Of a DNA stretch of 64,000 nucleotides, positions 2,421-64,000 are shown in pieces. Source of the stretch: Hemiscyllium ocellatum (Eukaryota); NCBI RefSeq assembly GCF_020745735.1, contig NC_083435.1, positions 41,441,090 through 41,505,089 on the forward strand. Direction: 5' to 3'. The notes below the pieces were generated by a model. That model did no database searches. It was given only the letters and a program-made list of their open reading frames with translations, and was not told where the DNA came from. Both the position numbers and the translations under genes were made by a program. Numbering within the stretch: position 1 is the stretch's first letter; each line of letters begins with the position of its first letter.

Positions 2421-2679
2421 TATAAAAGATAAAGCCCCATAGTTCTGCCAAGCCATAGGGTTGCTCTCCCGTCAAAAGGAGATGCTTAGTCGTAGTTTAA
2501 CCTGAAGGGCACCACACCTCAGGTCAGGGGTGATATCGAGACCGATCCTTTGTGGTAACCTCGGACAGTTGCAATGCAGAGTAATGCTGTCAGCATGATT
2601 TCAATTCCTGCACTAGCTGAGGTTACTATAAAGAACTTTCCTTCTCAAATTTTACCCTTGTCAAAGGAGAAACTGAGGA

Positions 2680-3075
2680 AACTCATGTTGCTCCAGAAAT
2701 ACTTGGATTGACTGTGAGAGACGTCAATCAGAGAGCCCACCCACTCTGCCCATTGTCTCCTCTTCCTCTTCCAGAGCTGGTTCACTTCCTATAGGGACTG
2801 AAAACCAAGTGAGGAGATGGTGAGTGAAGGAGCAGCTTTTATACAAATTGTATCCCATAATATCCACATCAGTCTTCAGGCAGTCTGACTATCCTGTGGG
2901 TAATCAGGGGTGGAAATGTCCCTTATGCTGTGTGAGAAGATCCAGCTGAGAGAGCTGTTTACTCGGTGCTTTGTGCTGAACTGTGTGACTGGAGCTGTGT
3001 GTGGGAAATTGGGAGTGTTTGTTGGAAGCATGTCCCTTTGATTTACAGGATGAGTTTTGTTGATTACTGAATTCA
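2680..3075 (+). promoter_or_regulatory. Putative promoter, exon 1 (ATG 2817-2819, donor GTGAGT at 2820) and exon 2 acceptor (3048) of ZNF-A
   Basis: Contains GACGTCA (CRE-like), CAATCA, CCCACCC, a pyrimidine tract, ETS-like CACTTCCT and GAGATG|GTGAGT. The same cassette lies upstream of ZNF-B and ZNF-D in the orientation of each gene. Confidence 0.6.
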
Positions 3076-3679
3076 TCTCCTATACTTGGAGACACATTGA
3101 TAGCAGTGTCATTTAATGTCTCCGTTTGAGATATTTTTTCCCCTGAAACTTTGGCCTTTCGCGAAAGCCTGGACTTGGATTTGATCTTTTTGCCCAGTGC
3201 TGTGGCTGATAGCTGAATTTGGAAGGTGCACTCTGATTGAGTGCATTGTATCTGATTTCCTAGGATAAACCAGAACCCTTCTATCAGTTACACTGAAGCA
3301 ATATTTTCCTCAGCTTCTAGCACTGCTTGCTCAGTGTGTTTTCTTTAATTTCTCTTCTGCAAACAAGGCAAAACATTTTAACATATCCATTGAATTACTA
3401 TTTCTGCTGAGTGCATTTTTGCATTCAACAAATACTTTCAGGGTAAAACTTAACCACGACAGCATGTCTTGAGCAACCATCAACTGAGAGCTTATTTTAC
3501 ACTCTGCCCATCTTCTCAATGCTTGAGGAAATGGGGTGTGTATGTGGGAGATGCTGGGCAGAGGGAAGAAAGTAACCTCAGTGACTGCTTCGGGTGCATT
3601 TGCTAAACATACTGTGTGCGTAACAGTTGAGTGAGGAAAAAGAAATGACTTGAAAAGAAAAGATTTGCTGGGAGTCCAC

Positions 3680-4239: not shown

Positions 4240-6955
4240 ACCAGGACATAGAAAAGATGTGCAGGAACAGCAAAGTTAGAGTGATAATGGAGTATTTCAA
4301 TGTGCAGGAAGACTGGGAAAATCAGGTTAGTAGTGGATTGCAAGTAAGGTATTTGTGGAATGTCTACAAGATGGCTTTTTGGAGTAGCTTGTCATGGAGC
4401 ACACTAGCGAACAGGCAATACTGGATTTAGTGTTATGCAATGAGGCAGACTTGATAAGGGAGTTTAAGGTGAAGGAACCCTGAAGAAGCAGTGATCAGAG
4501 CCTGACTGAATTTATTCTGCAATTTGAGGGGGAGGAAATAGAATCAGAAGTATTACAGCTGAATAAAGGCATCTATAGAGACTGAGGGAGGAGCTGGGTA
4601 GGATTGACTGGGAGAGTAACCTAGCAGGAAAGGCAATGGAACAGCAAAGGCAGGAGTTTCTGGGAAATGCTGGAGACACAGCAGAAATTCATCCCGAGGA
4701 AAAAGAAGCATGGTTCAGGGAGGATGAGGAGACTATGGCTGACTGGGGAGGTCAGGGATAGCGTAAAAACAAAAGAGGAAGCATATAATGTGGCAAAGGG
4801 CAGTGGGAAACCAGAGGATTAGGAAGCTTACAAAGACCAACAGAGGGGCAACAAAAAAGAAATAAGGAGGGAGAAGATTAAACATGAGGGGAAGCTAGCC
4901 AATAATGTAAAGGAAGAATGTTAGAGTTTCTTTAGATATATAAAGAGCAAAACAGAGGCAAAAGTAGTCTTTGGACCACTGGAAAATTATGCTGGAGAGA
5001 TAATAATGGGGAACAAGACAGTGGCTAAGGAACTGAATTATTACTTTGCATCAGTCTTCACAGCGAAAGACACGAGTAATGTCCCAAAAATTCAAGAGAA
5101 TGAGAGGGCATAGCTTAGTATGGTGGGCACCACCAAGGAGAAGGTGCTAGAACATCTGAATGGCCTGAAGGTGGATAAATCACCTAGACCAGATGGACTA
5201 CACCCCAGAGTTCTAAGGGAGATAGCTGAAGAGATGTGGAGGTGTTAGTGGTGTTCTTTCTGGAATTGCTAGAATCAGAGAGGGTCCCAGAAGACTGAAA
5301 ATTCGCTAACGTGACACCCTTGTTTAAAAAAAGGAGAGCAGCAAAAGAGGGAAAATTAAAAACTGATTAGCCTAACTTCAGTTGTGGGTAAGATCCTGAA
5401 TCTGATTAGATTAGATTAGATTACTTACAGTGTAGAAACAGGCCCTTCGGCCCAACAAGTCCACACCGACCCGCCGAAGCGCAACCCACCCAGACCCATT
5501 CCCCTACATTTACCCCCGCCCCTAACACTACAGGCAATTTAGCATGGCCAATTCACCTAACCTGCACATTTTTGGACTATGGGAGGAAACCGGAGCACCC
5601 GGAGCAAACCCACACAGACACAGTCAGTCTCCTGAGGTGGGAATTGAACCCGGGTCTCTGGCGCTGTGAGGCAGTACTGCTAACCACTGTGTCACGGTGC
5701 CGCCCACAATCTATTGCAAAGGATGAGATGTCTAAATACTTGGAAATGTCTGGTAAAATAGGGCAAAGTCAGCATGGTTCATTAAGGGTGGGTTTTACCT
5801 GGCAAATCTGCTAGAACTCTTTGAGGAAATAATAAGCAAATTAGACCACCGAGAGCCAATGGATGTTATCTGCATGGACTTCAAGAAGATTTTTGACAAA
5901 GTGCCGCTACTGAATAACGTAAGGGCCCATGATGTTAGAGGCAAGGTGCTAGCATGGATAGAAGCTTCGCTGTTTGGAAAAAAGCAGGGAGTAGGGATGA
6001 AAGGGTTCTTCTCAGGATGGCAGCCAGTAACAAGTGGTGTTCCACAAGGCTCAGTATTGTGACCACAACTTTTCACTTTATACATTAAAGATTGAGATGA
6101 AGGGACTGAGGGCATTCTGGCTAAGTTTGCAGATGATACAAAGACAGGTAGAGGGACAGGTAGCATGAGGAGGCAGGGAGGCTGCAGACGGATTTGGACA
6201 GATTAGGAGAGTGGGCAAAGAAGTGGCAGATGGAGTACAATATGGGAAAATGTGAGATCATGCACTTTGGTAGGAAGAATAGAGGCATGGACTATTTTCT
6301 AAACAGGGAGAAAATTCAGAAGTCTGAGATGCAAAGAGACTTGGGAGTTCTCGTCCAGGATTCTGTCAACGTAAACTTGCAGGTTGAGTCATTAGTTAGG
6401 AAAGCAAACACAGTGATGGCATTTGTTTTGAGAGGACTTGAATATAAAAGCAGGAATGTAATTCTGAGGCCCTGTAAGGCTCTGGTGAGACCACATTTAG
6501 AGTATTGTGTTCAGTTTTGGGCCACATATCTCAGGAAGGATGTACTGGTATTGGAACGTGTTCAAAGGATACTCATGAGAGTGGTCCCAGGAATGAAAAG
6601 TTTCGCAGACAAGGAACATTTAGGGACTCTGGGTCTACACTCAATGGAGTTTAGAAAAATGAACGGGAGGATCCAGTTGAAGCTTACAAAATACTTAATG
6701 GCCCGGACAAAGTATATGTTGGGAAGATGTTTCCATTGGTCAGAGAGACTCGGACCCTAATCAATGAATTCATTGCCATAAGAAGGCTGTGGAGGTCAGG
6801 TACTGACATAGATAGGTTCTTGACTATCAGGGGGATTAAATGTTATGAAGAGAAAGTGGAAGAATGCGGTTGAGAAACTTACCAGTCATGACTGATTGGC
6901 AGAGCAGACTCAATGGGCTGACTGGCCTAATTTCTGCTCGTATGTCTTATTGGCC
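4240..6955 (+). mobile_element. Degenerate CR1 LINE ORF2 (endonuclease end plus RT) with 3' UTR
   Basis: Motifs [38 protein letters not shown] and RPHLEYCVQFW; multiple stops. Confidence 0.9.
5404..5705 (-). mobile_element. HE1 (V-SINE family) tRNA-derived SINE nested in CR1
   Basis: GGGCGGCAC head, V-domain GGGTGCTCCGGTTTCCTCCCA and (AATCT)n tail on the minus strand. Confidence 0.9.
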
Positions 6956-8895: not shown

Positions 8896-9725
8896 TGCAT
8901 CAAAAATAGAGATGTATATATCACTGAATATATTTAAGAAAGAAATGTTTAGATTTCTAGAAGGAAAAGGTGTCAAGGATATTGGTGGAAAGCAAATACA
9001 TGCTGTTGATACAGAGCGTTAGAAGTGATAATTGGTGAACAAACTCAATGAGCCAAATGGCCTACTCCTGCTACCAATTTCTGCGTTTCTGAAAAGAAGA
9101 AGAAAATTGAGGAGTCAGATCTGTCAGTAAAGGAGGAGAAAGTATTCGACAAAATCATGTTTACTTTTCCTGTTTTACAGAAGGATTGTGCCGCACTACA
9201 CCAGAGAATACAGAGAGGACAGACACAGATAGATCCTGACCATCACCCAAGGAACAACTGCACAATTGTGGGAAGACATTCTATTCCTTCACAGCATTGC
9301 TCAACACAGAGAAGGTTGGGCAGTGAAACCATCATCTGGAAATTGGTCAGGTCAGGGGAGCTTTGACATATCATCAGTTCTAAAACTGGTCAGTGGTGTG
9401 CTGCCTTCCATCAGAACCAACCTATCTGAAGTTTGACCGCAGGTGATGGGTCAGGTTGAGATTGGGAAGAAGCGTGGTGATAGTTTCAGTCCTTCACTGA
9501 GCTTCATGAATCACTGACTCATTCCTATAGGGGCGAGGCAGTTCAAGAGGAGTACTCACAACTTGTGAAGCCTTGTGACACATCAGAGAAAGGAATCCAG
9601 TGTGAGATGTCCAAAGTTAATGATTCGCTGATGCATTCACACTGTGGAGAAGCCATTTGCATGTGATGTTTTTGACAAAATATTCTCATAGACATCAACA
9701 CCTCCGTGCAAATCAATGCATTTAC

Positions 9726-10829
9726 ATGATGGAGAAGCCATTCAGATGTGAGGTCTGTGACAAGTCATTCTCTCAGTCGTCACACTTCCTTGTGCACCAA
9801 CGTAGCCACACAGGGGAGAAACCATTTATGTGCAAGGTGTGTGAGAAATCATTCTCACAGTCATCAAGCCTCCATGTGCACCAACGCATTCACACAGGGG
9901 ACAAAACATTCTTGTGCAAGCTGTGTGACAAATCATTCTTGCAATCATCACATCTCCTCATACATCAACATATTCATACAGGAGAGAAACCATTTATGTG
10001 TGAGTTGTGTGGCAAATCATTCTCACAGTCATCAAGCCTTCGCATACACCAACGTATTCACACTGGGGAGAAACCATTCACATGTGAGGTGTGTGACAAA
10101 TCATTCTCACAGTCATCACACTTCCACATACATCAACGTATTCACACAGGGGAGAAGCCATTCACGTGTACAATGTGCAACAAATCATTCTCCAACTCAT
10201 CAAAACTCCTGCTCCATCAGAGGATTCACACGGGCGAGAAACCATTCAGATGCGAGATGTGCGACCAGTCATTTTCGTCATCATCAGCACTCCGGGTACA
10301 CCAACGGGTTCACACAGGGGAGAAACCGTTCACTTGTGAGTCGTGTGACAAATCATTCTCACAGTTATCCACCCTCCGCAAGCACCAACGCATTCATAAG
10401 GGGGGCAAAGCATTCACATGCAGTGTGTGCAACAAATCATTCTTGAGATCATCAAACCTTCTACTCCATCAGAGGACTCACACAGAGAAGAAACCGTTCA
10501 CGTGTGAGGTATGTGACAAATCATTCTCTGAGTCATCAAACCTCTTGCGGCATCAGAGGATTCACACAGGGGAGAAACCATTCAGATGTGAAGTTTGTGC
10601 CAAATCATTCTCTCAGTTGTCAATCCTCCATATACATCAACGTATCCACACAGGGGAGAAACCATTCACGTGTGAGGTGTGCAACAAATCATTCTCGAGA
10701 TCATCAACCCTCCGCACACACCAACACATTCACACAGGGGAGAGACCATTCAGGTGTAATATGTGTAACAAATCATTCTCAAGGTCATCGAGATTCCTGC
10801 TTCATCAGAGGATCCACACAGCAGAGTGA
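9726..10829 (+). CDS. Tandem C2H2 zinc-finger protein ZNF-A, 13 fingers, no effector domain visible
   Basis: 13 intact CxxC-12-HxxxH units, mostly with TGEKP linkers. First ATG is at 9726 (the track start at 9657 is TTG). Terminal exon acceptor TTTTCCTGTTTTACAG ends at 9180. Confidence 0.92.
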   Translation: MMEKPFRCEVCDKSFSQSSHFLVHQRSHTGEKPFMCKVCEKSFSQSSSLHVHQRIHTGDKTFLCKLCDKSFLQSSHLLIHQHIHTGEKPFMCELCGKSFSQSSSLRIHQRIHTGEKPFTCEVCDKSFSQSSHFHIHQRIHTGEKPFTCTMCNKSFSNSSKLLLHQRIHTGEKPFRCEMCDQSFSSSSALRVHQRVHTGEKPFTCESCDKSFSQLSTLRKHQRIHKGGKAFTCSVCNKSFLRSSNLLLHQRTHTEKKPFTCEVCDKSFSESSNLLRHQRIHTGEKPFRCEVCAKSFSQLSILHIHQRIHTGEKPFTCEVCNKSFSRSSTLRTHQHIHTGERPFRCNMCNKSFSRSSRFLLHQRIHTAE

Positions 10830-13379
10830 CTCTTTAACACTGAGGTTTGTGATGAGCATTTCTTGATATCTTTGGCTATCTGGAATACCACTCGGTTCAC
10901 ATGGAGGAAACTCTTCAAGTATTCATAACAAGGCTTTTGTATAGTCAGTGTATTCTCTGCACCATCAACACACAGAGGAGAGAAATCTCCATTGGTGCGA
11001 GTTCTGTAATGAAACTTTCACATAATTGTTGGACCTTCTGGAACATCAGTGAACCCACAGAGGAATGACCAGCTCATACTTTTGGCTAACTTTTATCAGT
11101 GAGTGAACTGTATAGTATCACTCAGCAGCCCCAAGGGGCTGAGAACTGCATGGTACTGGTGGGGCTGGAGGTGGGGGGGAAGGTAGCTGAGAATGCAATA
11201 GGGAGGTGAAGGCAAGTTGAAAGTGATAGATCAGTGGGACTGGGACACAGAACAAGATGCAGCTTTCACTCCCATCAAGCAACTAGTGATGATATCACCA
11301 GTGCTGAGGGATGATGATGTAACAATGGAGTCAACTTGCAGTGTGATGTCAGTGAAACAGGACTGGGAGTAAACCCCATATAGAGAGGATAACCCGCTGT
11401 GTTTATATCCAGAGTATTAACACAAACTGAACAACACTACACAGATTAAGAGAGACCATTCATTGTCTTTACTTGCAAGCATTTCAGCTAGGACCTGTTT
11501 GCGTGAGAATGACTGATAGTCAAATCTGACTTCAAGCTATTTCATTGTATGTTTCGTAAACTACTTCTGTCTGCTCCAAATGATGTTACTTAATTTGCAG
11601 AGATATTGCTTGGGACTATACACTTGAACACCTTCAAGGTTAAAGTGCAACTGAAGTGCAACAACTTGACTATGAAATATAAGATTTGTCTGGACAATGT
11701 TGCAAAATAACTTGCAAATGACATTTCAGGAATCTTTTTCCCTTTTGTTATGGGAAGGGGAATGTTTTGATAAATTACTTTTTACACTGCACCTAACCAT
11801 ATTTATGTGATTTCTGATGTTCTATGTAATAAAGATTTAAGAGCAGTAGCCATTTTACATATGTTTAAAATTTAAATTGCTCCGAATATTAACATGAGTT
11901 TCCAGAAGCTTAGGAAACTGAACGGTGAAATGGTGATGACTTTGAGAAGCAGATTACATGGAGATTTGAACTTGTTATTGTACCATCTGAATGAAGCCTC
12001 ACATTTCAGCTGCTGTCTCCGTTCTCCTGGTAAACATTTGACAGAAAATTCTAGTGTGAAAATAGCATTCTTCATCCTCAGAGGATTTCAAACTTACAAT
12101 ATCAGCGTGGGATGTGTCTGACAGATTGGAAGAGGAAAACTCACAGCATCCAAGGGAGTGCTGTTGTGCAGTAGTGGGACCGACAGACATAGGAGAGAGA
12201 AGCACAAGGTGAATGGGGCAGTTTTCACCAAGGTCTCCATCTCTCTTGGTCAAATTATTTCTTAGCGAAAGGATTTGCCAGCTTTTATTAAAAGAGATCA
12301 ATTGAGGCAAATACTCTTGATTGATTAAATAATATGGAGAATGTGAGGACTGCAGATGCTGGAGATCAGAGTCAAATCTGTTAGAAACAAAATTCAATAA
12401 AATTTAGACGAGACCACCAAAACTGGAAACAAGATAATTTATTCTATGATCTTGCAAGAAAGGACTTCAATTTGCAGAGAGCAAATGAAGTGAAGAAAAT
12501 TCAAATTTCTACAACAGTTTCAACCTTTGAGTTGCGTGAGGTCACCTCTTCTGATCCCTACATTACCCAATCTTTCTTACCATTTCGCCTCTGCCCATCT
12601 ATGCTCCACGCCCATTGCCCCCTTCTTTCCAAGTTGGCAATTTTCCCTCTTGCATGTGCTGTCATAAGGCTAAACTCTTATCTCGATGTTCCCTTTGTAT
12701 CTTTTAATGCCTCGCTTATGTTTCAGTAATCTTAGCTTTTTGCTGAAACTGTTATTTTTAAATATTATGTTAAAAGGAATTATTTTCTTTAATAATTCTA
12801 CATTAAAGTTATTTCCTAATACTTGCTTAGACCCTTTTTCTTATGCATAGAACAACACACTTTCCCATTGCTTACAAAATGTATGGTGCAGGAAAAGCAC
12901 AGCAGGGTAGGCAGCATCAGAGGAGTAGGAGAGTTGACGTTTCGATCAGCTCTTCATCAGGAATGAGGGTTGACCCAAGGGGGGGTCTATCCAGCCTATC
13001 AAAACATGTGGGATGACTTCTTTCTCCCAAAGTGTTGTTTGTATCAGTTATTGGTTTTGTAATTAATACTGATCACATTTCATTCTCTAAAACACTTTGA
13101 CATTAGATGTCATTTCATTGCCCTGATTGGTTACTTGGTCAAATCACTCTGATTGGATAATTGGATTCCAGGGAAGTGCTCATGTAACGTCAGTTTGAAG
13201 ATCTTTTTGTGCACTCAACGGATTAATGAGGGTCAAAACAAATCACTGACCTGACCAAAGTGAATCAGTTCATGAAATCAGCTCAGAGAAAACAATCACT
13301 GTGAAGAGGAAGAGGAAATATTTGTGAGAGAATTAGGGGAAATGGGATGGCATTGATTTTTGTAGATACAAAAACTCTT

Positions 13380-16326: not shown

Positions 16327-16635
16327 TGGGATGACATGGTGGCTCGGTGTTTAGCACTGCTGCCTCACAGTGCCATGGACCTGCGTTCGATTCCAGTCTC
16401 GGTGACTGTGTGGAGTTTGCACATTCTCCATGTTTGTGTGGGTTTTCTCCCACAATCCAAAGATGTGTAGATTAGGTGAATTGGCCATGCTAAATTGCCC
16501 ATAGTGTTAGGTGCATTAGTCAGGGGTAAGTATGGGGAATGGGTCTGGGTGGGTTACTTTTTGGAGGGTCGGTGTGGACTTGTTGGGCCGAAGGGCCTAT
16601 TTCCTTACTGTAGGGAATCTAATCTAATCTAATCT
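16327..16635 (+). mobile_element. HE1 SINE
   Basis: tRNA-like head, V-domain and (AATCT)n tail. Confidence 0.85.
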
Positions 16636-17589
16636 ATCTGCTTGAGTGTAAGGTCTTTTCCAAACCTGCTAGAACTAATTCCCAGGAACTGATCTCCTTA
16701 ATAGCCTACTACTTCTAACGTTTTAACATAATGTTCTTCCTCAGTGATGAATCATCTGCAGAGCCTTTTGATTAGGAGCATCCAGGTCTGGCCTCATAAG
16801 TAAACAAAAGCTTGTTTGGTCTGTTTATATTTTAACACAAGCAGTTATCCACAGTTCAAATGTCATCTTTAGCTCACAGTTCCCAGCTCCAAACCAAAAT
16901 TGATAAAAGAATAACACCTAACAAAATGAAAAATGAGTGACAGCTCCAATGTTATACAGAATGTCATTGAAATAGCCATAAATAACTCAATATCCAGCTG
17001 ACACCAAACATTGAAATGAATCTTGGATGAGGGTAAGGTGAACACATGACACAGTTATTACATCGAGGTATGATGTGTTGAGGGACCTCAGGTCTCTAGA
17101 AACTTAAGGCCCACTCACCATTCTGTAATGAACCATATTTATTTCATTTTGGAATGTAAGCTAAAATGGAAGTTGGGACTAGTTTACACATAAATACCTG
17201 GAGAGCTTTGCAATTTGGAAAATTCATGTAAAATTTTAGCTGTGAAGGGCAAGTTTTGAAGTATAAAGGGGCTTACTTCAAGACAGAATAGCACCAAGAG
17301 TGCACAAAAACCTTCATAATAATACAAATCTCTTTTGTTTTGCAGAAAGTTATAGTTAAGATGGTGGAAGGTCCTAGGGTGATTTGAAAAAAATGTTAAG
17401 TATCCAGATCCCAGCACACAGACATAACTCGCCGTCCACAGGATAATCAGTTCCCAATGCGCACACACCTGAACAACAGCAAATCAGTAATAATCCTCAG
17501 ACACTCTGCACCTCCCAGATGATTACTCCTCACCTTATATTCAGAAATGAGCTATCAACAAATCTTAGCATGTAAACTGGAAGGGAAAG

Positions 17590-24499: not shown

Positions 24500-27400
24500 A
24501 GAGTCATAGAGATGTACAGCACGGAAACAGACCCTTCAGTCCAACCTGTCCATGCCGACCAGATTTCCCAACCCAACTTAGTCCCACTTGTCAGCACCCG
24601 TCCCATATCCCTCCAAACCCTACCTATTCATATACCCATCCAAATGCCTCTTAAATATTGCAATTCTACCAGCCTGCACCACATCCTCTGTCAGCTCATT
24701 CTGTACACGTACCACCCTCTGCGTGAAAAAGTTGCCCCTTGGGTCTCTTTTATATCTTTCCCCTCTCACCCTAAACCTTTTGTCTATTTATCCTATCCAT
24801 GCCCCTCATAATTTTGTAAACCTCGATAAGGTCACCCCTCAGCCCCCAACGCTCCAGGGAAAACAGCCCCAGCCTGTTCAACCTTTCCCCATAGCTTAAA
24901 TCCTCCAATCCTGGCAACATCCTTGTAAATCTTTTCTGAACCCTTTCAAGTTTCACAACATCTTTCCGATAGGAAGGAGACCAGAAATGCATGCAATATT
25001 TCAACATTGGCCTATCCAATGTCCTGTACAGCCGCAACATGACCTCCCAACTCCTGTAGTCAATACTCTGACCAATAAAGGAAAGCATACCAAACGCCTT
25101 CTTCACTATCCTATCTATCTGTGACTCCACTTTCAAGGAACTATGAACCTGTACTCCAAGGTCTCTTTGTTCAGCAACACTCCCTAGGACCTTACCATTA
25201 AGTGTATAAGTCCTACTAAGATTTGCTTTCCCAAAATGCAGCACCTCGCATTTATCTGAATGAAACTCCATCTGCTACTTCTCAACCCATTGGCTCATCT
25301 GGTCTAGATCCTGTTGTAATCTGAGGTAACCCTCTTCGCTGTCCATGCCGACCAGATATCCCAACCCAATCTAGTCCCATCTGCCAGCACCTGGCCCATT
25401 TCCCTCCAAACCCTTCCTATTCATATACCCATCCAAATGCCTCTTAAATGTTGCAGTTGTACCAGCCTCCACCACAATTTTGGTGTCATCTGCAAACTTA
25501 CTAACTGTGCCTCTTAATGCTCGCATCCAAATCATTTACGTATATGACAAAATGTAGAGGGCCCAGCACCGATCCTTGTGGCACTCCACTGCTCATAGGC
25601 CTCCAATCTGAAAAATAACCCTCCACCACCTCTGTCTTCTACCTTTGAGCCAGTTCTGTATTCAAATGGCTAGTTCCCCCTGTATTCCATGAGATCTAAC
25701 CTTGCTAATCAGTCTCCCATGGTGAACCTTGTTGTACGCCTTACTGAAGTCCATATAGATCACATCACAGCTCAGCCCTTATAAGTCTTCTTTGTTACTT
25801 CTTCAAAAAACTCAATCAAGTTTCTGAGACATGATTTCCCACGCACAAATCGATGTTGACTATCCCTAATCAGTCCTTGCCTTTCCAAATACATGTACAT
25901 CCTGTCCCACAGGATTCCCTCCAACAACTTTCCCACCACTGAGGTCAGGCTCACCGGTCTATAGTTCCCTGGCTTGTCCTTACCGCCCTTCTTAAACAGT
26001 GGCACCACATTTGCAAACCTCCAGTCTTCCGGCACCTCACCTGTGACTATCTATGATACAAATATCTCAGCAAGAGGCCCAGCAATCACTTCTCTGGCTT
26101 CCCATAGAGTTCTCGCTTACACCTGATCAGGTCCTGGGGATTTACCCACCTTTAACCATTTCAAGACATCCAGCACTTCCTCTTCTGTAATCTGGACATT
26201 TTGCAAGATGTCACCATCTATTTCCCTACAGTCTATATCTTCCATATCCTTTTCCCCCATTTTCTGTGGCTCCACACAAAGGCCGCCTTGCTGATCTTTG
26301 AGGGGCCCTATTCTCTCCCTAGTTCCCCTTTTGTCCTTAACATATTTGTAAAAACCCTTTGGACTCTCCTTAATTCTATTTGCAAAAGCTATCTCATGTC
26401 CCCTTTTTGCCCTCCTGATTTCCCTCTTAAGTATACTCCTACTTCCTTTCTCCTCTTCTAAGGATTCACTCGATCTGTTCTGTCTATACCTGACATTTGC
26501 TTCCTTCTTTCTCTTTACCAAACCCTCAATTTCTTTAGTCATCCAGCATTCCCTATACCTACCAGCCTTCCCTTTCACCCTGACAGGAATATACTTTCTC
26601 TGGATTCTTGTTATCTCATTTTCCAGCTGTCCCTTTACCTGCGAACATCTGCCTCCAATCAGCTTTCAAAAGTTCTTGCCTAATACCTTCAAAACTGGCC
26701 TTTCTCCAATTTAGAACTTCAACTTTTAGATCTGGTCTATCTTATTCCATCACTATTTTAAAATGAATGGAATTATGATCGCTGGCCCCAAAGTGCTCCC
26801 CCACCGACATCTCAGTTACCTGCCCTGCCTTATTTCCCAAGAGTAGGTCAAGTTTTGCACCTTCTCTAGTAGGTACATCTACATACTGAATCAGAAAGTT
26901 GTCTTGTACACACTTAAGAAATTCCTCTCCATCTAAACCTTTAACACTATGGCAGTCCCAGTCAGTCTTTGGAAAGTTAAAATCCCCTACCATAACTACC
27001 CTATTATTCTTACAGATAGCAGAGATCTCCTTACAAGTTTGTTTCTCAATTTCCCTCTGACTATTAGGGGGTCTATATTACAATCCCAATAAGGTGATCA
27101 TCTCTTTTTTATTTCTCAGTTCCACCCAAATAACTTCCTTGGATGTATTTCCGGGAATATCCTCCCTCAGCACAGCTGTAATGTTATCCCTTATCAAAAA
27201 TGCCACTCCCCCTCCTCTCTTGCCTCCCTTTCTATCCTTCCTGTAGCATTTGTGTCCTGGAACATTAAGCTGCCAGTCCTGCCCATCTTCGAGCCACGTT
27301 TCTGTAGTTTCTATGATATCCCAGTCTCATGTTCCTAACCATGTCCTGAGTTCATCTGCCTTCCCTGTTAGGCCCCTTGTATTGAAATAAATGCAGTTTA

Positions 27401-28075
27401 ATTTATTAGTCTTACCTTGTCCCTGCCTGCCCTGACTGTTTGACTCACTTCTGTTCTCAACTGTACCAGCCTCAGATTGATTTCTTTCCTCACTATCTCC
27501 CTGAGTCCCACGCCGCCACCTTACTAGTTTAAATCCTCCCAAGCAGTTCTAGCAAATTTTCCTGCCAGTATATTAGTCTCCTTCCAATTTAGGTGCAATC
27601 TGTCCTTCTTGTACAGGTCACTTCGACCCCAAAAGAGATTCCACTGATCCAAAAATGTGAATCCTTCTCCCATACACCAGCTCCTCAGCCATGCATTCAT
27701 CTGCTCTATCCTCCTATTCCTGCCCTCACTAGCTCGTAGCACTGGGAGAAATCCAGATATTAGTACTCTTGAGGACCTCCATTTTAAATTTCTGTCTAAC
27801 TCTCTGTTATCTCCCTTCAGAATCTCAACCTTTTCCCTTCCAATGTCATTGGTTCCAATGTGGACAATGACCTCTTGCTGGCCCCTCTCCCCCGTGAGAA
27901 CATTCTGCACCCTCTCTGAGACATCCTTGATCCTGGCACCAGGGAAACAACACACCATTCTACTTTTTCTCTGCTGGCCACAGAAACATGTGTCTGTTCC
28001 TCTGACTACAGAATCCCCTAACGCAATTGATTTCTTGGAAGCAGACATACCCCTCATTGCATTAGAGCCAGTCTA
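24500..28075 (-). mobile_element. Near-complete but disrupted CR1 (HER1-like) LINE: ORF1 SGNH-esterase, ORF2 EN-RT and 3' UTR
   Basis: ORF1 (27524-28057) has GDSVVRG, HIGTNDIG and DRLHLN. ORF2 has VGDFNFP, SDHN, PEDWRFANVVPLFKKG and GNYRPVSLTS. Stops and deletions are present. Confidence 0.93.
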
Positions 28076-29880: not shown

Positions 29881-30726
29881 TCAAGTGTGGCTCCTCTGAT
29901 GGGCCAGGAGTGTTGACAAGTGTCTGTAGGCTTTGTCACACAGCTCACATGTGAATGGTTTCTCCCTTGTGTGAGTGCGTTGGTGGTTACGGAGGGTTGA
30001 TGACCTTGAAAATGATTTATTGCACAGATGACAGGTGAATGGTTTCTCCCCTGTATGGATACGTCGGTGTTGCATGAGTGTCGATGGCTGTGTGAAGGCT
30101 CGAGCACATACTTCACATTTAAAAGGCTTCTCCCCTGTGTGAATTCTTTGGTGCATCAGGAGATGTGAATATTGAGTGAAAGCCATCTCACAAACCTCAC
30201 ACCTGAAGTGTTTCTCTCCTGTGTGAATCCTGTGATGCATTAGAAGCCTGGTAGATGTCGGGAAAGTTTTACCACAAACCTCACACTTGAAGGGTTTCTC
30301 CCCTGTGTGAATTGTCTGATGGCGCAGGAGGTTTGATGACTGTGTGAAGGCTTTGTCACATATTTCACACGTGAACAACTTCTCCCTGTTATGAGTACGT
30401 TGGTGAGCACGAAGGGTTGATAAATCAGAGAAAGATTTGATACACACCTCACATGTGAATGGTTTCTCTCCTGTATGAATGTACTTGTGTGTGAGGAAGG
30501 TTGATGACCGTGAGAATGACTTGTTACACACTTCACATTTAAATGGTTTCTCCCCAGTGTGAATCCGTCGGTGATTTACGAGTGTTGATGAGTGTGCAAA
30601 AGCTTGGTCACAAATCTCGCATTTGAATGGTTTCTCCCCAGTATGAATGCGTTGGTGACTCACCAACCTCGATAAGTGTATAAAAGCTCGGTCACAAAAT
30701 TCACACTCAAATCGTTTTCCTTCCAT
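29881..30726 (-). CDS. Tandem C2H2 zinc-finger protein ZNF-B, 10 fingers
   Basis: 10 intact C2H2 units with TGEKP-type linkers; the conserved acceptor places the exon start at 31176. Confidence 0.92.
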   Translation of the reverse strand: MEGKRFECEFCDRAFIHLSRLVSHQRIHTGEKPFKCEICDQAFAHSSTLVNHRRIHTGEKPFKCEVCNKSFSRSSTFLTHKYIHTGEKPFTCEVCIKSFSDLSTLRAHQRTHNREKLFTCEICDKAFTQSSNLLRHQTIHTGEKPFKCEVCGKTFPTSTRLLMHHRIHTGEKHFRCEVCEMAFTQYSHLLMHQRIHTGEKPFKCEVCARAFTQPSTLMQHRRIHTGEKPFTCHLCNKSFSRSSTLRNHQRTHTREKPFTCELCDKAYRHLSTLLAHQRSHT

Positions 30727-31969
30727 GTTGCTGCTCAGCTCATGGACAACTGAAATGTGTTAGGATACATCATGAATCTGTGGAATACTCCTAATTCTTG
30801 AACAGTCTTTCACCTACAGGAAAGAATTACTCGTTCAAGAAGCTTGATGAATGATTGAAGCTCTCACCACATTTGGAGCCACTCATTTTTTTCCAGCCTC
30901 ACCCTGACCGACACCCATAGCTGAACCTTCAGGAAGGTTGGTTCTGATGGAAAGCTCGACACCACTGACCAGTTTCAGGTCTGATGATATGTCAAAGCTC
31001 CTCTGATCTGACTGATTTCCAGATGATGGTTTCAATGCCCGAACTCCTCTGTGTTGAGCAATGCTGTAAAGGGATTGGATGTCTTCCCACAGTTGTACAA
31101 TTGTTCTTTCGATGATGGTCAGGATCTGTGCTGCCTATTGTCTCTGTATTCTCTGGTGTAGTACAGTGCAATCCTTCTGTAAAACAGGAAAAGGAAATGT
31201 GATTTCCTCCAACTTTGATTTGCTCCTCCTCATGAATTGAAGGGGCTGATTCCTCAGTTAAGGAATTGTTCCACAGTAAATTCCAGTCTGCTATTCACCT
31301 CTGTGGAGGGAAATCAGATACAAGTCCTTTCTTTTTCCTCACTTGACCATCATACACCCTCTGTTTCCAACAGGGACACTGGACGAAGACCAGGAGCAGA
31401 AAGTGCAGTGATTTTCTTTCATCTGCCCAGCCCTCATTTTCACAGGCACCATGACAGCAATGGAGAGTATGAGTTCACTGAAAACTAATATCACTGAAAC
31501 TTGTCAATCTGGAAAGATTCGAGGCTCCTCAGTCATCATCCTAGGTATGCTTCCTCCTGAGGTGTTAGGAAAAGTCCCTTCAAACACACAAATTCTCCCT
31601 TTCAAGCAGGTGGAGGCCAAGTGTGCTTTATTGGTCTTTGTAATATTATCAATTTAAAACAACTGCCATGAAGGTTGCTCTGAGATCATACAATTCTGCC
31701 TGACAACAGGCCACCTGGTCTGGTTACCATGTGGACAGATTGAAATTTCCTGAGCAAGATGTAAAGTTATCACACCTGAAAACAAGGATAACAGCAGCAG
31801 GGACTAACTGAACAGACTTTCAGTCTCTGAGATTACAGACAGAGAGTGAGACAGATTATAGACAGGCCTCGAGGACTACAGCCAGTGTGATCAGAGGGGA
31901 GGAGAAGGTGTTCTTCTATGGACTGCCAAGCAGAATGTGACAGGGAACACAGTCACATGGCACATTTGT

Positions 31970-32275
31970 GGGCGGCACGGTGGCACAGTGGTTAGCACTG
32001 CTGCCTCACAGCGCCTGAGACCCGAGTTCAATTCCTGACTCAGGCGACAGACTGTGTGGAGTTTGCACGTTCTCCCCGTGTCTGCGTGGGTTTCCTCCGG
32101 GTGCTCCGGTTTCTTCCCACAGTCCGAAGACGTGTCGGTCAAGTGAATTGGCCATGCTAAATTGCCGTAGTGTTAGGTTAGGGGTATGGGTGGGTTGCGC
32201 TTCGGTGGGTCAGTGTGGACTTGTTGGGCCGAAGGGCCTGTTTCCACACTGTAAGTAATCTAAAATCTAATCTAA
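31970..32275 (+). mobile_element. HE1 SINE (young, near full length)
   Basis: GGGCGGCACGGTGGCACAGTGGTTAGC head, V-domain and AATCT tail. Confidence 0.92.
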
Positions 32276-33990: not shown

Positions 33991-34497
33991 GAGCCTAGGA
34001 GAAAGTCAGGACTGCAGATGCTGGAGATCAGAGTCGAGAGTGTGATGCTGGAAAAGCACAGCAGGTCAGACAGCATCCAAGGAGCAGGAGAATCGATGTT
34101 TCGGGCATAAGCCCTTCATTAGGAATCATACACCATCACAACAATGTTAGTGGGAGATTGCTCTGCACACACTGTCTGTCACTTTCCGACATTATGACAT
34201 CATCTACAATTCATAAAGTACTTCATTTGCTGGCGAGCACTTGGAACATCTGGTGGTTATGAAATCTGTATATAAATGTAAGGCTTTTCTTTCCTGGGAG
34301 AGTTGGAGATAGGGTGGGATGTGACCTTGGAGGGATTTGAAAAGAAAGCAAATATCAACAACTCAATTCAAATACACAAGTGACCATTTACCATCCACAA
34401 GATAATAAACAGCGCCTACCACACACACAAAACTCAACACCAGGAAACGAATAAGGATTCTCAGACACTCTTCACTTCCCAGATAATGACACCTCAC

Positions 34498-34910
34498 CCT
34501 CTCATATTCAGGAATGAGTCACCAACAAAATTCAGCCTGGAAATCAGAGGGAAATGCTTCCAATAAACACACTCAATATCCAACACACAACTCCAGTCAC
34601 ACAGTTCAGCACAAAGCACCAAGTAAACAGCTCTCTCAGCTGGATCTTCCTACACAGCATAAGGGACATTTCCACCCCTGATTACCCACAGGATAGTCAG
34701 ACTGCCTGAAGATTGGTGTGGATATTATGGGATACAATTTGTATAAAAGCTGCTCGTTCGCTCACCATCTCCTCACTTAGTTTTCAGTCTTTATAGGAAG
34801 TGAACCAGCTCTGGAAGAGGAAGAGGAGACAATGGGCAGAGTGGGTGGACTCTCTGATTGATGTCTCTCACAGTCAATCCAAATATTTCTGGAGCAAACG
34901 GAGTTTCCTG
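34498..34910 (-). promoter_or_regulatory. Putative promoter, exon 1 (ATG 34768-34766) and 39-nt exon 2 (34536-34498) of ZNF-B
   Basis: Near-identical to 2680-3005 and 60150-60470; canonical GT/AG boundaries. Confidence 0.6.
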
Positions 34911-35739
34911 AAACTTTGGAAACTGACCGGGGAGATGGAGGTGACTGAGCAGCAGATCAGGCGGGGTTTAAATTTGTCATTGTCCCATCTAAATAGTATT
35001 TGACAGAGATTTCTAGTATGGGAATAACATTCTTCATCCTCAGAGGCTTTCATACTGACAACATCAAAGTGGGGTGTGCAGCATCGAATGTGTTTGACAG
35101 CAGATCAGAAGTGAAAGACATATAGCACCGAAGACAGTGATGATGTGCACTGGCAGAATCAGCACATGCACAGGAGGGAGGGGCACCGGACATTGAAAAA
35201 TCACTCTCACGCGAATTTGAAGGGATCACCATCAGGCAGCCCCCCCCCCACAATCAAAACTCACAGAGAAGCTACAGCATTTGTTACTTACAGTCACGCT
35301 CCATGCAAACTGACCCTGGTGTGTAGGTTTAACCCGGGTCACTCACACCTGGATCAGGATCAAGACTTATGTACCTCAGATATTCAGATGTTCCTGTATT
35401 CCTGACTTTAATGTTATCGGACACTAGATTTAGAAGCAGAACCTGGGCCAAATGGAAAGAGGCCTCTCGACCCAATGTATCCAGTGGTGACAGGGTGCAC
35501 TGCAGCTCCCTCTCGCTGAGACATAACTGCAATTTCCAGATGTTAAATGATTGTTCTGAAGTATGCTTGTATTTAATCAAGTGGGATTTAGAATGTTTAG
35601 GTTTTTGATGTGGGGATCATCTATTATTACTGAGCCTGTGGGTTTAACTTCGTCCTGAATTCTACACAGTCCTCCCCATCGATTTCTGTTCTCCTGACAC
35701 CAGGGACTTTCCCATCTTTCACAGTGAAACTCCTTGAGT

Positions 35740-38170: not shown

Positions 38171-38292
38171 CCTGCCTCTGGTTAACACATACAGTAATGA
38201 GCCAACAAGAAAACTCAACTTGTAAATCAGAAAGGGACTAATTCCAAAAAAATACATTCAATATGGATAATGCAACTCCAGTAAAACAGTTC

Positions 38293-39245
38293 TTTTTATT
38301 TCAAAATATACTTTATTCATAGAAATAAATCTTTGGTACCTGTACAATTTGTCATGTCGTTCATAGATAGATATATATATATACACATTGCATGTCTTAA
38401 CATTACAAAGAACAGATTGAATCAATCGAATTTACAGTTATCCTATTTACAGTTCCCTTTATTAACCATCCACTTTCTTATTATTTAGCTGTGGCTTCAG
38501 CGGAACCCACCTAGTGAGTGGGTGCCCTGTTATACGATAGCAAAGGAACCTTCTTTAATCCCCAGTTTATGGGGTTACCATTGTCCATTTGACTGTCCTG
38601 TCTCTGGGGTAGCTGTCTGCATCCCCATGGTAAGCACGAACTGCTGGACCTTCGCTGGGCTGAGGTAGCTATCCAGCTCCTCACTGGGGTCATTTACCCG
38701 CTCTGGTGTCATTGAGCCAAGGCAAGGGTCCGCACCGCTCAGTTCTGTGTCTGACAATGGGGCTGTCAGAGGATCACAGCTTTCAGTTACCTGTAGTTGT
38801 GGGGCAGTGGGTACTCCCTGGTTCTCACTGGGTGGAGGGTGGACTTCTGGGGGTCCGTTGTTTCCTGATTGGGAGGAAATGTCCTCCTCTTTATCTACGG
38901 CGCTTTGTCTCTTCTTCTGGTGGTGATGACCTTCCTTTGCACCCGTCTTCCCCATCCGAAGCGCTGGCCGTCTCTCCCTCGTGCAGTTGTCTTTTCCCCC
39001 TTTGCTGTGAGGCTTTGGGGGCCTGGCAGGATTTTCTCTTCCTGTTTTTTAACAGGTATCCACTCCTCTGCCTTCTCAATTACCTCGTCCTCCATTGCTT
39101 CCATCTGCCCAGCTAGAGCTAGGATCAGCTGCTGTGTCTCTCCACTGGCTGCTGCCTCCTCCACTCCAGCCTGTTCTTTTTTCTGTGTGCCACCAGACTC
39201 CGTTTCCTTACTGTCTGGGTGGACCTTGCTGGTCTTTGGGGATCC
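38293..39245 (-). mobile_element. Tx1/L1-like non-autonomous retrocopy with 18-bp TSD
   Basis: ACTCCAGTAAAACAGTTC at 38275-38292 and 39246-39263. Minus-strand AATAAA and A-rich tail at the left end. Charged ORF1-like peptides, no RT motifs. Confidence 0.65.
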
Positions 39246-39560
39246 ACTCCAGTAAAACAGTTCAGCACAAAGTACTGAGTAAACAACTCTCTCAGCTGGA
39301 TTTTCTCACACAGCATAAGGGACATTTCCACTCCTGACTACACAGGATAGTCAGACTGTCTGAAAATTGGTGTGGATATTATGGGATGTACAAAAGATGC
39401 TCTTTCACTCACCACCTGCTCACTAGGTTTTCAGTGCCCATCTGAAGTAAATTAACTTGGAAGAGGAAGAGGAGACAATGGGCAGAGTGGGTGGGTTCTC
39501 TGATTTGCAGCTCTCACAGTCAATTCAAATATTTCTGGAGCAATTTGAGTTTCCTGAAGC
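39246..39560 (-). promoter_or_regulatory. Degenerate orphan copy of the ZNF promoter/exon 1 cassette
   Basis: About 85% similar to the other copies; ATG mutated to GTG; exon 2 remnant at about 38180-38290. Confidence 0.6.
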
Positions 39561-40244
39561 TTGGGAAACTGAGCAGTGAAATAAAGGTGACTTTGAGCGA
39601 CAGATCAGGTGGGGATTTAAAGTTGTCATTGTCCTCTCTGAATTAAAACCTGACTTATTGTAGTTGCTGTCTCAGTTCCCTTGATAAATGTTTGACAGAG
39701 ATTTCTAGTGTTGGAACAGAATTCTTCATCCTTGGAGGCTTTCAAACTGACAACATCCTGTCTCAGCTCATCTCCTGCTGAAACCCTTAACCCTAAATTG
39801 GTAGGCTCTAGATTCAACCATACAATGTTCTCCTGGATGTTGTCACATTGTGTGCTGTAAATCTGAGTTCGTCCAAACTCTACTGTCCAAGCTAAAATCA
39901 AAACCCATTCACCACTCATGCTTCTGCTTGCTGATCTACTTTAATCAAACAACACAACAATTTTTCTCTTTCTTGTTTTCAGATCTTTCCATGGCTTTTC
40001 CGTGAGTAAGCTAACAAATACTTAGACTGTGATATGTCTTATGTCCCCAGTGGTACGCTGTCCTCGAAAATTAAAATTGAGTGCAAACGTCAAATATATT
40101 AAGAACTGTGTCTTACCAGTATGAATTTGGAATCTGAGCAATTACAATTCTGAAGCCATTTCAGCATTGGTTGTTAGTTGCAGATGTAGGACACTTTATT
40201 CCAGAAACTGTTGCATTTGGATTTTAACCATCTTATGTTGATTA

Positions 40245-40586: not shown

Positions 40587-40912
40587 GGGGTGGCACGATG
40601 GCTCAGTGGTTAGCATTGCTGCCTTACCGTGCCAAGGACCTGGGTTTGAGTCCCACCTCGGGCAACTGTCTGAGTGGAGTTTGCACATTCTCCCTGTGTC
40701 TGCGTGGGTTTCCTCCGGGTGCTCCGGTTTCCTCCCACAAACATGTGCAGGTTAGATGAATTGGCCATGTTAAATTGCCCATAATGTTAGGTGTGTTAGT
40801 CAGGGGTAGATTATAGGGTGGGGGAATGGGTCTGGGTGGGTTTCTCTTCGGTGAGTCAGTGTGGATTTGTTGGGCCGAAGGGCCTGTTTCCGTACTGTGA
40901 GGAATCTAATCT
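40587..40912 (+). mobile_element. HE1 SINE
   Basis: Head, V-domain and AATCT tail. Confidence 0.88.
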
Positions 40913-41369: not shown

Positions 41370-43065
41370 GCATATCAATATTAAGAAGTAAAATGTTTTG
41401 GGTGTTTTGAAAAACATTAAGGTAGATAATTCCCCATGGCCTGATGGGATCTATCCCAGGATGCTGAAGGTGGTCTAGCAAGAGATTGCTGAGGCCTTTA
41501 CCTAGAGTCATAGAGATGTTCAGCATGGAAATAGACCCTTCGGTCCAACCTGTCCATGCCGACCAGATATCCCAACCCAATCTAGTCCCACGTGCCAGCA
41601 CCCGGCCCATATCCCTCCAAACCCTTCCTATTCATATACCCATCCAAATGCCTCTTAAATGTTGCAGAGATCTTTTGTTTCCCCTTTGGCCACAGACGAA
41701 GTCTCAGAAAACTGATAAATACCCGATGTTACTGCTTTGTGCAAGAAGGCAATGGGGGATAATCCAGGAAATTAAAGGCCTGTGAGCCTTATATTTCTGG
41801 GAAGGATATTGTTGGAGAAGATTCTGAGGAACAGGATTTACATTTGGAGAAAAATGGACTTATGGAATATTTCAGCATAGCTTTATGCAAGGGAGGTCTT
41901 GTCTCACAAATTTGATTGAGTTATTTGAGCAAGTGGTTGATGGTGGTAAGGCAGTGGATGCTATCTACATGGACTTTGGGGGCAAAGCCTTTGATAAGGC
42001 ATGGTAAGCTGATCCAGAAAGTCCAAATGCATAGAATCCATGGTGAGTTGGCAAGTTTTTACAAAATTGGCTGAGCCACAGAAATAAATAGTAGTGCAAT
42101 AGAGGTCTATGACCAGTTGTGTTCTGTGAGGATCAGTGGGGACCTCTGTTGTTTGTAACATCTCAGACTGATTTGAATGAAGATGTTGGCGATCTAATTA
42201 GTAAGTTTGCAGATGACACAAAATGGTGGAGCTGTGGCCAGTGAGAAAGGATATCAAAAATGTAGCAGGACATAGATCCGCTGGAAAGTTGGGCAGAGAA
42301 ATGACAGATGGAGTTTAATCTGAAAAAGTGTGAGAGTCGAATGTAAGAGAGAAGTATACTGTAAATGGCTGGATCCTTCGGTGCATTGATATATGGACAG
42401 ATTTTGGGGTCCAAGTCTATAGCTGCCTGAAAGTGGCAACGCAAGTGGATAGGCCATAAAGAAAGCATACAGCATGCTTGCCTTCATCAGTCGGGGCATT
42501 GAATATAAAAGTTGGCAAGTCATGTTGCGACTATGCAAGATTTTGGTCAGGTCACATCTAGAGTATTGTGCACAGTTGTGGTTGCTACATGAAAGGCAGT
42601 ACGTAAAGGCTTCAGAAAGAGTGCAGAACAGGATTTTCGTGGTGTTGCCTGGATTGGAGGGCATTAGCTATAAGGACAGGATGGAAAAACGTGGATTGTT
42701 TTCGCAAGAGTGTTGGAGGCTGAAAGGTGACCTGATAGAAGTAAATACAATTATGAGGAGCATGGATAAAGTGGATAGTCGGAGTCTCTATTCCAGGGTG
42801 GAGATGTCAAATACTATGTTTAGGTTTAAGATGTGAGGGGAAAAGTTTAAATGAGACATGCGAGGAAAGGTTTTGATGCATAGTAGGAGAAGATATAGTG
42901 GAATAAGGTAGCAAAGTTTAAGAAGGATTTGGACAGATACAAGAACAGGAAGAGAATACCAGGATAAGGGCCATGGGCAGGCAGATGGGTTTATTTCAGA
43001 ATTGCATCATGTTCAGCAAAGACATGGTGGGCCACAGTCTATTCTTGTGCTGTACTGTTCTATGA
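41370..43065 (+). mobile_element. Degenerate CR1 ORF2 with antisense CR1 tail inserted at about 41505-41665
   Basis: KFADDTK, RSHLEYCAQLW and RLKGDLIEV. Confidence 0.85.
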
Positions 43066-43872
43066 TACTAAGACTATGTTTTCCATTTACCTCACGGTGC
43101 CTGGGAAGATGGCGTGCTCTAGGTGAGGGAAAGAAAGCAGCCACACTGTCTGCTCCTGGTCACTATCCAGTGTTTCTACTGGGAACTGTGTGTAACAGTC
43201 AAGTGAGGAAAAAGAGAGCTTTTATATCTCATGTCCCACATAGGAGAACAGCAGACTAGTATTCACTGTGGAACAGTCTGTAACTGAGGTGGTGGTCAGA
43301 TGGTCACTCCACTCATAATCCAGAGGCCCAGGATAATGCTCTGGGGATAGAGTTGAAATCCCACAATGCTAAGGACTAACATTTAAATTCAAATATCAAA
43401 CCTGGGGTAATGCCATATCCTGAATTGCACCGTACTACATAGGAGAATAAGAGAGGACAAGCACTGTAGATAAATTCAATCCATCAGTCAGAGACCAACT
43501 GCACAACTGTGGGAAGTCATCCAGTCCCTTCACAACACTGCTCAATATAGAGAAGGTTGGACAGTGAAACCATCATCTAGAAATTGATTGGGTCACAGGA
43601 GCTTTGACAGGCCATCAGACCTCAAAGTGGTCAGTGTTGTGGAGACTTCCATGGGAATCAACCTTTCTAAAGGTTGGGCTGTGGGTGATCAGTCAGGGTG
43701 AGGCTGGGAAGAAGTGTGAGTGGCTCCAAGTGTGGTAGGTGTTTCAATCATCCATTGAGCCTCATGAACCACTAACTCATTCCTACAAGCTAGTTGAGTG
43801 TGAGAATTGGCCACAGATCTGTGAAGTCTCAAGACAAATATGTTGTACAACTGCAGAAACAAGGACAGCTTC

Positions 43873-45440: not shown

Positions 45441-46183
45441 ATAGATTGTAAGAGCCTGGCTGGATGAGCCTGTGTGTGTGAACCTGTACACAGTCTCACT
45501 GTGCAGGGTGTCCAGTGGGACTGGGACACAGAACAAGAAGCAGCTTTCACTCCCATCAAACAACTAGTGATGACATCACCAGTGCTGAGGGATGATGATG
45601 TAACAATGGAGTCACCCTGCAGTGTGATGTCAGTGAAACAGGACTTGGAGTAACCCCCATGCAGTGAGGACAACCCGCTGTGTTTGTATCCAGAGGGTTT
45701 ACACAAACTGAACAATGTACACAGATGGAGAAACAGACTCCAGATATTGTCTTTGTTACTGAGAATTTCACCAGCACATGGTTGGGAGAAACAAAATGAC
45801 AGTGGGCATCTAACCACAATCCATTGTAAAAATATTTCTTAAACCTCTTCTATCTACTGCAGTGCAGTTACTGAAGATGGGAGTCAATTTGCAGAGATAG
45901 CGCAGCAATTGCCATGACAACAACATCTCCCAGTGATACCACTTCAGGACCTGGCAGAAGCAAGAGAAACAGTGAATAAAACAAGCATATATTTGTTCCT
46001 GAACATTTTAAAGGTTATCTGCTGTGTAGAGACAAATAATATTGGAAACCTCTGGACGAATAAATAGTTTTGTTCACGAGTGATAATCTGGACTCTTGTA
46101 TGTTGGGTAACTTAACAATGGATAGTGCATACAAATATTATTTTAAGAAACAGGAAAATGAATTTTTGGGTAAATACCTTTAT

Positions 46184-52225: not shown

Positions 52226-52410
52226 TTAAAAATCACACAACACCAGGTTATAGTCCAACAGGTTTAATTGGAAGCACACTAGCTTTCGGAGCGACGCTCC
52301 TTGGTTGCTCCGAAAGCTAGTGTGCTTCCAATTAAACCTGTTGGACTATAACCTGGTGTTGTGTAATTTTTAACTTTGTACACTCCAGTCCAACACCGGC
52401 ATCTCCAAAT
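52226..52410. mobile_element. Penelope-derived palindromic mini-element
   Basis: 67-bp inverted arms (52226-52292 and 52307-52373); same family as 13822-14623. Confidence 0.75.
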
Positions 52411-59870: not shown

Positions 59871-60066
59871 TGGTTACACAGATAGAATGTTGAGAAGCTA
59901 CAAAGTAATTTGAAAAGTCAGGCAACATCCAGATCCCAACACACAGAACAGACCATTCACACTGCCCAGGATAATAATTAGCTTCCAAAACACAAAAAGA
60001 ACACAACAACAGGAATTCAGTAGAAATCCTCAGACACTCTGCTCCTCCGAGAAAATTACACCTCAC

Positions 60067-63990: not shown

Positions 63991-64000
63991 CATTGGCAGA

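Follow-up and report, generated by a model that had tools for sequence, protein, structure and literature searches.

A probable 5′ regulatory end, shared by the zinc-finger genes of a shark gene cluster, as the best-kept part of a duplicated gene unit

Zinc-finger genes of the window and their predicted structure

The window, i.e. the whole stretch of 64,000 nucleotides that was analysed, is a vertebrate zinc-finger (ZNF) gene cluster with abundant LINE and LTR debris. It contains four finger arrays, three in intact C2H2 ORFs (genes A, B and D) and one that is broken (gene Cg; Table 1). All three intact ORFs carry a copy of the same block sense-upstream, at a distance of 3.1-6.4 kb. The 351-residue ORF of gene D, which starts at the first finger, is identical with a gene called on one contig of assembly GCA_020745735.1. 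Opposite to gene D the assembly has a further gene call (+ strand, ~45700-64000 and beyond) with a product of 667 residues that extends over more than 21 kb and continues beyond either end of the range retrieved.

None of the ZNF genes in the window encodes a KRAB, SCAN or other N-terminal or effector domain. The arrays of A, B and D comprise 33 fingers, which vary most at helix positions +6, +3 and -1 and in which the zinc ligands and the linker are fixed. Such a distribution is typical of diversifying poly-zinc-finger arrays, in line with an earlier note on this DNA, which had suggested that the DNA-binding arrays diversify freely. Protein searches with the finger ORF of gene D (the whole ORF as well as residues 1-100) retrieved only generic poly-zinc-finger proteins from a wide range of animals, none of them a close shark paralogue. 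Exact look-up of the A, B and D ORFs in a clustered protein collection gave no match, and neither did a metagenome scan with a 25-mer from the core of the block.

The ~450-550 nt in front of the first finger consist of decayed fingers with stops in all frames, and these stops are common to the paralogues. In these leaders (9181-9725, 57240-56773, 31176-30727 and 43424-43850) the decayed fingers lie in shifting frames, yet ~84% of the sequence is kept. One in-helix stop, NH*LI, is common to the leaders of B, Cg and D and was lost in A together with a 16-bp deletion; as B, Cg and D share this stop, the leader was already non-coding before they duplicated.

The predicted splice acceptor at the start of the leader, CCTGTTTTACAG/AAGGATTG (the slash marks the exon border), is an excellent site, identical in A, B and D and destroyed in Cg. 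In gene A the last base of CCTGTTTTACAG is 9180, and the predicted exons start at 9181 (A), 31176 (B) and 57240 (D). On the other side, every copy of the block has a short stretch that closes in GGAG(A/G)TG/GTGAG, with a GTGAGT or GTGAGC donor in four of four copies. Because the conserved donor pairs with the conserved acceptor, a two-exon gene with introns of 6.4, 3.6 and 3.1 kb is predicted, and the block likely holds a non-coding leader exon. Moreover, acceptor-like and GTGAGG donor-like sites frame a 39-nt piece just 3′ of the core in B and D, a possible non-coding mini-exon whose donor is kept in remnant F and in copy C and is absent from A.

The ATG of exon 1 might be taken for the coding start. 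However, when it is spliced in silico to the conserved acceptor it opens only an upstream ORF (uORF), which has 14 codons in B and D and 62 codons in A, and no in-frame path leads from it to the fingers. These short uORFs, together with the called ORF of gene D that begins at the first finger, rule this ATG out as the start codon.

A ~300-bp intron segment of 78-85% identity is found in the A and B units and in the region of remnant F (40587-40912, 31966-32275, 16328-16634 and 5404-5709). As the segment is inverted beside Cg, the 5′ region of this gene is a rearranged patchwork. The surrounding debris includes reverse-transcriptase-like fragments at 6194-6760 and 42474-42836 and a LINE remnant at 24771-28057 (- strand) with an ORF (27524-28057) that has a match to a GDSL esterase domain, as found in ORF1 of CR1-like LINEs.

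Table 1. Copies of the block, associated flanks and remnants, and ZNF genes in the 64-kb window (exons as predicted).
Feature	Coordinates	Strand	Remarks
Copy A	2677-3068	+	core (2708-2992) near-identical to D; ATG 2817-2819; donor GT 2820-2821
Copy D	60090-60477	-	ATG 60337-60335; donor GT 60334-60333
Copy B	34517-34909	-	ATG 34768-34766; donor GTGAGC
Copy C, 5′ part	39247-39555	-	orphan; no finger array downstream on the same strand
Copy C, 3′ continuation	38186-38292	-	homologue of A 2978-3062
Insertion splitting copy C	38293-39246	-	954 bp, retroposed; AATAAA signal and short A tail
Upstream flank of D	60478-60668	-	common to B (34910-35194), C (39556-39804), E and G
Downstream flank of D	59880-60089	-	common to B (34313-34516) and remnant F, ~69-71% identity
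Remnant E	49558-49918	-	upstream flank and first ~35 bp of the block, then truncated; downstream of broken gene Cg
Remnant G	11891-12215	-	content and truncation junction as in E; downstream of gene A
Remnant F	17354-17588	-	3′ tail of the block and downstream flank only
Possible mini-exon	D 60105-60067; B 34536-34498	-	39 nt, non-coding; begins inside the block of copy D, 3′ part and donor in the downstream flank
Gene A, predicted last exon	9181-10829	+	~545-nt decayed-finger leader, then 12-finger ORF; array 9657-10829; MMEKPF at 9726
Gene D, predicted last exon	55717-57240	-	468-nt leader, then 351-aa 12-finger ORF (56772-55717)
Gene B, predicted last exon	29881-31176	-	450-nt leader, then 281-aa 9-finger ORF (30726-29881)
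Gene Cg	~43850-44760	+	broken array; acceptor destroyed; no sense-oriented block upstream

Block copies and the longer duplicated unit

When copy A (2677-3064) is compared by BLAST, D aligns over 388 bp at 96.1% identity, B over 393 bp at 92.6% and C over 320 bp at 85.9%. A 25-mer taken from the block is found four times in the window, as compared to zero occurrences expected from shuffles. Between 2685 and 3003 copies A and D differ at four positions (2702, 2869, 2872 and 3003), whereas ~14 positions separate B from D and 18 separate it from A. In the core, which comprises 285 bp (2708-2992), A and D agree at 283 of 285 positions (99.3%); the other pairs reach 95.8% (A-B), 96.5% (B-D) and ~89.5% (C-D). 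For the next 76 bp (2993-3068 in A) the values are 81.6% (A-D), 82.9% (A-B), 90.8% (B-D) and 63% (C-D). Upstream of the block B and D are 85% and C and D 80% identical, and downstream of it B and D are 69% identical; A has neither of these flanks. An intron segment (3084-3500 in A) shows 70-76% identity to its homologues, the pre-finger leader ~84% and the finger arrays ~72-76%. Thus, the core, including ~170 bp 3′ of the GT donor, is the best-kept part of the whole unit, the remainder of which ranges from 69 to 85%.

GACGTCA, CAATCA, CCCACCC, CACTTCCT and ATG/GTGAGT are present in both A and D. Copy D has no private substitution in the 285-bp core. Copy B has ten, including those at both CpGs and the loss of the TCCTATAGGGA dyad; it also lacks the ACGT centre and the T of GTGAGT, so that the corresponding motifs read GACATCA and GTGAGC. 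Its front end looks like one under relaxed evolution, despite the intact ORF. In copy C the ATG is changed to GTG and a TATA box on the antisense strand is mutated; the 954-bp insertion that splits it is bracketed by a 17-bp target duplication, GAACTGTTTTACTGGAG, at 39263-39247 and 38292-38276.

Most of what the earlier note had described here is borne out. All four copies lie at the places and on the strands it gave, with the block upstream of each intact ZNF gene in that gene's orientation, and the GACGTCA, CAATCA, CACCC, ETS-like and ATG/GTGAGT motifs it named are found in A and D. The identity of the block far exceeds that of adjacent paralogous DNA and of the fingers, and the copy attached to no intact gene has indeed decayed to about 85%. 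Its difference counts were slightly low, i.e. about three for A and D, and about a dozen for B. The description of the block as a cassette of ~320 bp, however, fits the limits of copy A only.

The extent of the flanks and the remnants were obtained by a more sensitive comparison combined with a profile search of the window. Upstream of the block, homology of B, C and D continues for another ~190-285 bp, and downstream of it that of B and D for another 200 bp or more. Copy A, in contrast, ends at hard breakpoints on either side (~2677 and ~3068), and the profile of the upstream flank detects no trace of this flank upstream of copy A. Just upstream of A, where the flank is replaced, lies a 204-bp direct repeat of 90% identity (1012-1215 and 2355-2558). 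Because B, C and D have homologous flanks, a bounded mobile cassette is ruled out: the block is the best-kept part of a longer duplicated gene unit, the collinear pieces of which are upstream flank, block, downstream flank, intron segments, leader and fingers.

Three remnants (E, G and F), which the earlier note had overlooked, retain only pieces of this unit. G and E share a truncation junction downstream of gene A and Cg, respectively, which identifies the modules of these two genes as sister duplicates. Each of the three intact blocks accompanies an intact gene, whereas all four orphans (C, E, G and F) are truncated, split or mutated.

The regions downstream of A and Cg contain a second island of identity (11232-11446 versus 45513-45726; 215 bp, 91.6%). 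Elsewhere these regions are 67-77% identical, and the island may represent either a further exchanged tract or a repeat of recent origin. Between Cg and remnant E lies a small LTR-flanked element (46468-49449) whose LTRs (46468-46871 and 49039-49449) are 86.7% alike and whose ORF (47510-47932) matches a SCAN (gag capsid-like) domain.

Proposed role of the block and origin of its uniform core

Based on these findings we suggest, with a probability of roughly 0.6, that the block forms the 5′ regulatory end of a duplicated KRAB-less ZNF unit and that its core is kept alike by gene conversion and some selection. The unit would have been duplicated in tandem and inverted within the shark genome. 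The block most likely holds a core promoter, a short non-coding leader exon that closes in GGAGATG/GTGAGT, and the beginning of intron 1 (~170 bp). The transcript would be spliced from the donor of the block, possibly via the 39-nt mini-exon, to the acceptor ~450-550 nt upstream of the first finger, and the protein would consist of fingers only, with the leader ATG giving rise to a short uORF. The latest event of interlocus gene conversion, between A and D, would have overwritten no more than 300 bp (2703-3002). In the genes that are still functional some purifying selection may act as well, with the orphans C, E, G and F left to decay and B relaxed.

We infer promoter activity, the exon model, the role of selection and any co-regulation from the position of the block and from splice-like signals, and on these grounds the reading as promoter plus leader exon is likely. 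The sense strand of the block contains no canonical TATA box, and the block is CpG-poor (observed/expected 0.1, as compared to 0.24 for the window). Nothing points to a structured non-coding RNA gene: an Rfam search of the block gave no match at E ≤ 1 and the post-donor segment folds no better than shuffles on either strand (z = +0.18 and +0.55).

The earlier note had left it open whether gene conversion or strong selection keeps the block alike. In order to separate the two, variable sites were sorted with C as the outgroup, which leaves A, B and D as the three informative copies. A and D differ at four sites in 2677-3002 (326 bp) versus 14 sites in 3003-3068 (66 bp; p = 7e-9). At ~3000 their identity drops from 99.3% to 81.6%, which would mark the 3′ edge of a tract. 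At the same point the grouping switches: sites that unite A and D against B and sites that unite B and D against A stand at 10:2 in the core, as opposed to 3:10 in the 76 bp that follow (Fisher p = 0.005), although the informative sites are few (12 and 17). Private changes are rare in the core and frequent in the adjacent segment for A (2 of 285 versus 10 of 76; p = 5e-6) and for D (0 of 285 versus 4 of 76; p = 0.002), whereas B shows no such difference (10 of 285 versus 3 of 76; p = 0.74), and the heterogeneity of private changes is significant (p = 0.002). In a run test on the 81 polymorphic sites A-D reaches p = 0.0066 (~0.04 when corrected for six pairs), and the other pairs are not significant. 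At the 5′ edge of the A-D tract no comparison is possible because A has no homologous upstream flank.

As the lineages are not slowed in proportion, A and D differing from B in this respect, uniform constraint is contradicted. The simplest reading would be that up to 300 bp (2703-3002) were recently exchanged in a non-reciprocal manner, either between A and D or from a third copy into both. Inside the tract A and D differ by a clustered pair of A-specific changes (2869 and 2872), which would be later or unrepaired. Nevertheless, the identity of the core also stands out in B-D and C-D, and with similar edges; some constraint, older exchanges or donors outside the window would therefore contribute as well. 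Thus, of the two processes named in the earlier note, conversion between A and D is backed by the switch in site pattern and by the lineage-specific rates, with some constraint besides.

Selection alone would demand a regulatory element of 285 bp that is ultra-constrained in A and D and has lost its constraint in B, without any exchange. Such a scenario agrees with the core being less diverged than the flanks, with similar edges, in every pair, and with intact blocks accompanying intact genes. Moreover, a relaxation confined to B would explain why its private changes strike the ACGT core, the dyad and the donor. Promoters, however, typically show patchy constraint, whereas here virtually no change is found over 285 contiguous bases, ~170 bp of which lie behind the donor, and the adjacent 76 bp took 13% private change in A. 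In addition, the grouping flips at ~3000, from A with D to B with D, so that selection alone needs both a B-specific loss of constraint and a sharp constraint edge. We therefore consider it an improbable explanation.

A second alternative concerns the direction in which the block works. Its only canonical TATA box, TATAAAAG, is located on the opposite strand just past the donor (A 2843-2835, - strand; D 60311-60319, + strand; B 34742-34750, + strand), and in B, C and D it is preceded on that strand by a CCAAT box ~25 bp upstream. The sole two A-specific core changes (2869 and 2872) remove this CCAAT box from A. The block might thus act mainly or also in antisense direction, with a TATA promoter firing away from the ZNF gene and giving rise to a bidirectional head-to-head pair or to an upstream antisense transcript. 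Apart from the TATA box shared by A, B and D (mutated in C) and the CCAAT box, this is favoured by a donor-like AG/GTGACT site on the antisense strand of the upstream flank, which is kept in B, C and D according to the alignment. In addition, the would-be antisense promoter segment is the best-kept part of C (raw identities of 92% for the post-donor part and 86% for the promoter-exon part), and C is directed antisense towards the finger array of Cg; the antisense partners of A and D would fall beyond the ends of the window. However, past the upstream flank no homology is shared in antisense direction, whereas the sense side has the collinear gene unit. The sense donor is much nearer to the consensus and has a conserved acceptor as its partner, and A is entirely devoid of the upstream flank. 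An antisense role thus seems unlikely to us.

We regard it as very unlikely that a young transposable element, or a promoter derived from one, inserted independently beside the ZNF genes and makes up the block. In favour of this reading, the block is short, CpG-poor (0.1) and near-identical in distant copies, and LINE and LTR debris abounds in the cluster. However, the flanks of B, C and D are homologous on both sides, and the block therefore predates their duplication. The earlier note had listed target duplications or terminal inverted repeats as signs of a mobile element; none bound the copies. The only inverted match, 8 nt in A, is at chance level (~1.2 expected by our own estimate) and absent in B and D, and the block matches no Rfam family and no tRNA-like sequence. 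Finally, all seven full or partial copies in the 64-kb window lie in the context of a ZNF unit, and none lies outside it. It is extremely improbable that the near-identity is an assembly artefact, i.e. a collapsed or mis-polished repeat: nothing specific speaks for it beyond the general difficulty of assembling paralogue clusters, and the tract is only ~300 bp long, is set in unique, diverged flanks at both loci, contains two clustered A-specific differences, and the pattern recurs in B and C at graded identity.

Relation to known zinc-finger systems

The combination of one shared front end with variable arrays in a fast-evolving poly-zinc-finger family resembles the FiNZ genes, the ZNF expansion on zebrafish chromosome 4. 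There, the shared first exon is reportedly so alike that 447 of 684 genes can be targeted at their start site with a single morpholino, and TATA and TATA-less promoter classes are expressed in successive waves at zygotic genome activation (PMC10547256; 10.1101/2021.08.09.455629). On the side of the shark the likeness is one of DNA sequence, with co-expression as a possibility. The two systems differ in several respects. The shared FiNZ exon holds a real start codon and a conserved N-terminal domain, whereas the ATG of the shark leader opens a uORF only; a conserved N-terminal coding domain of the FiNZ type was not found in the shared first exon of the shark genes, and all frames of the leader contain stops. 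Furthermore, the early zebrafish class has a TATA box in sense orientation, whereas the canonical TATA box of the shark block is antisense.

Globin and protocadherin promoters are cases of homogenisation by interlocus gene conversion. The shark tract resembles such events in being a near-identical stretch of a few hundred bp within old flanks, with a change of the tree at its edge and with inverted partners on the same chromosome; as compared to typical cases it is judged from three informative copies and by its 3′ edge only. In mammalian KRAB-ZNF clusters the 5′ exons are conserved among recent paralogues. The shark cluster shares with them the tandem arrangement and diversifying fingers with variation centred on the DNA-contact positions, but its genes lack a KRAB, SCAN or other effector domain and have two to three predicted exons with a long leader of dead fingers.

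The earlier note regarded the locus as its best candidate for an undescribed system. This does not hold, as the FiNZ genes with their shared first exon and promoter classes have been described and homogenised promoters of tandem families are known, with one case of promoter homogenisation within a tandem cluster on record (PMC3749932). One shared switch combined with variable arrays is an already described idea. The present case differs in the shark lineage, the absence of an N-terminal coding domain and the leader of dead fingers.

The locus is a clean, small example of how a ZNF cluster keeps its regulatory front uniform while the binding arrays diverge, and it provides a gene model, composed of a leader exon, an optional mini-exon and a long dead-finger leader, for the KRAB-less ZNFs that fill the shark genome. 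We tentatively extend this to the idea, possible though rather doubtful, that one promoter-leader module, homogenised by continual conversion from consensus-like copies, heads KRAB-less ZNFs throughout the shark genome and switches on their large, freely diversifying repertoire of DNA-binding arrays together, e.g. in the embryo or the germ line. If so, it would constitute an independently arisen counterpart of zebrafish FiNZ in cartilaginous fish that does without an effector domain, and the post-donor segment with its antisense TATA and CCAAT boxes might add a divergent transcript to the switch. Should many clusters indeed begin with this module, it would serve as the mark of a co-regulated family and aid annotation.
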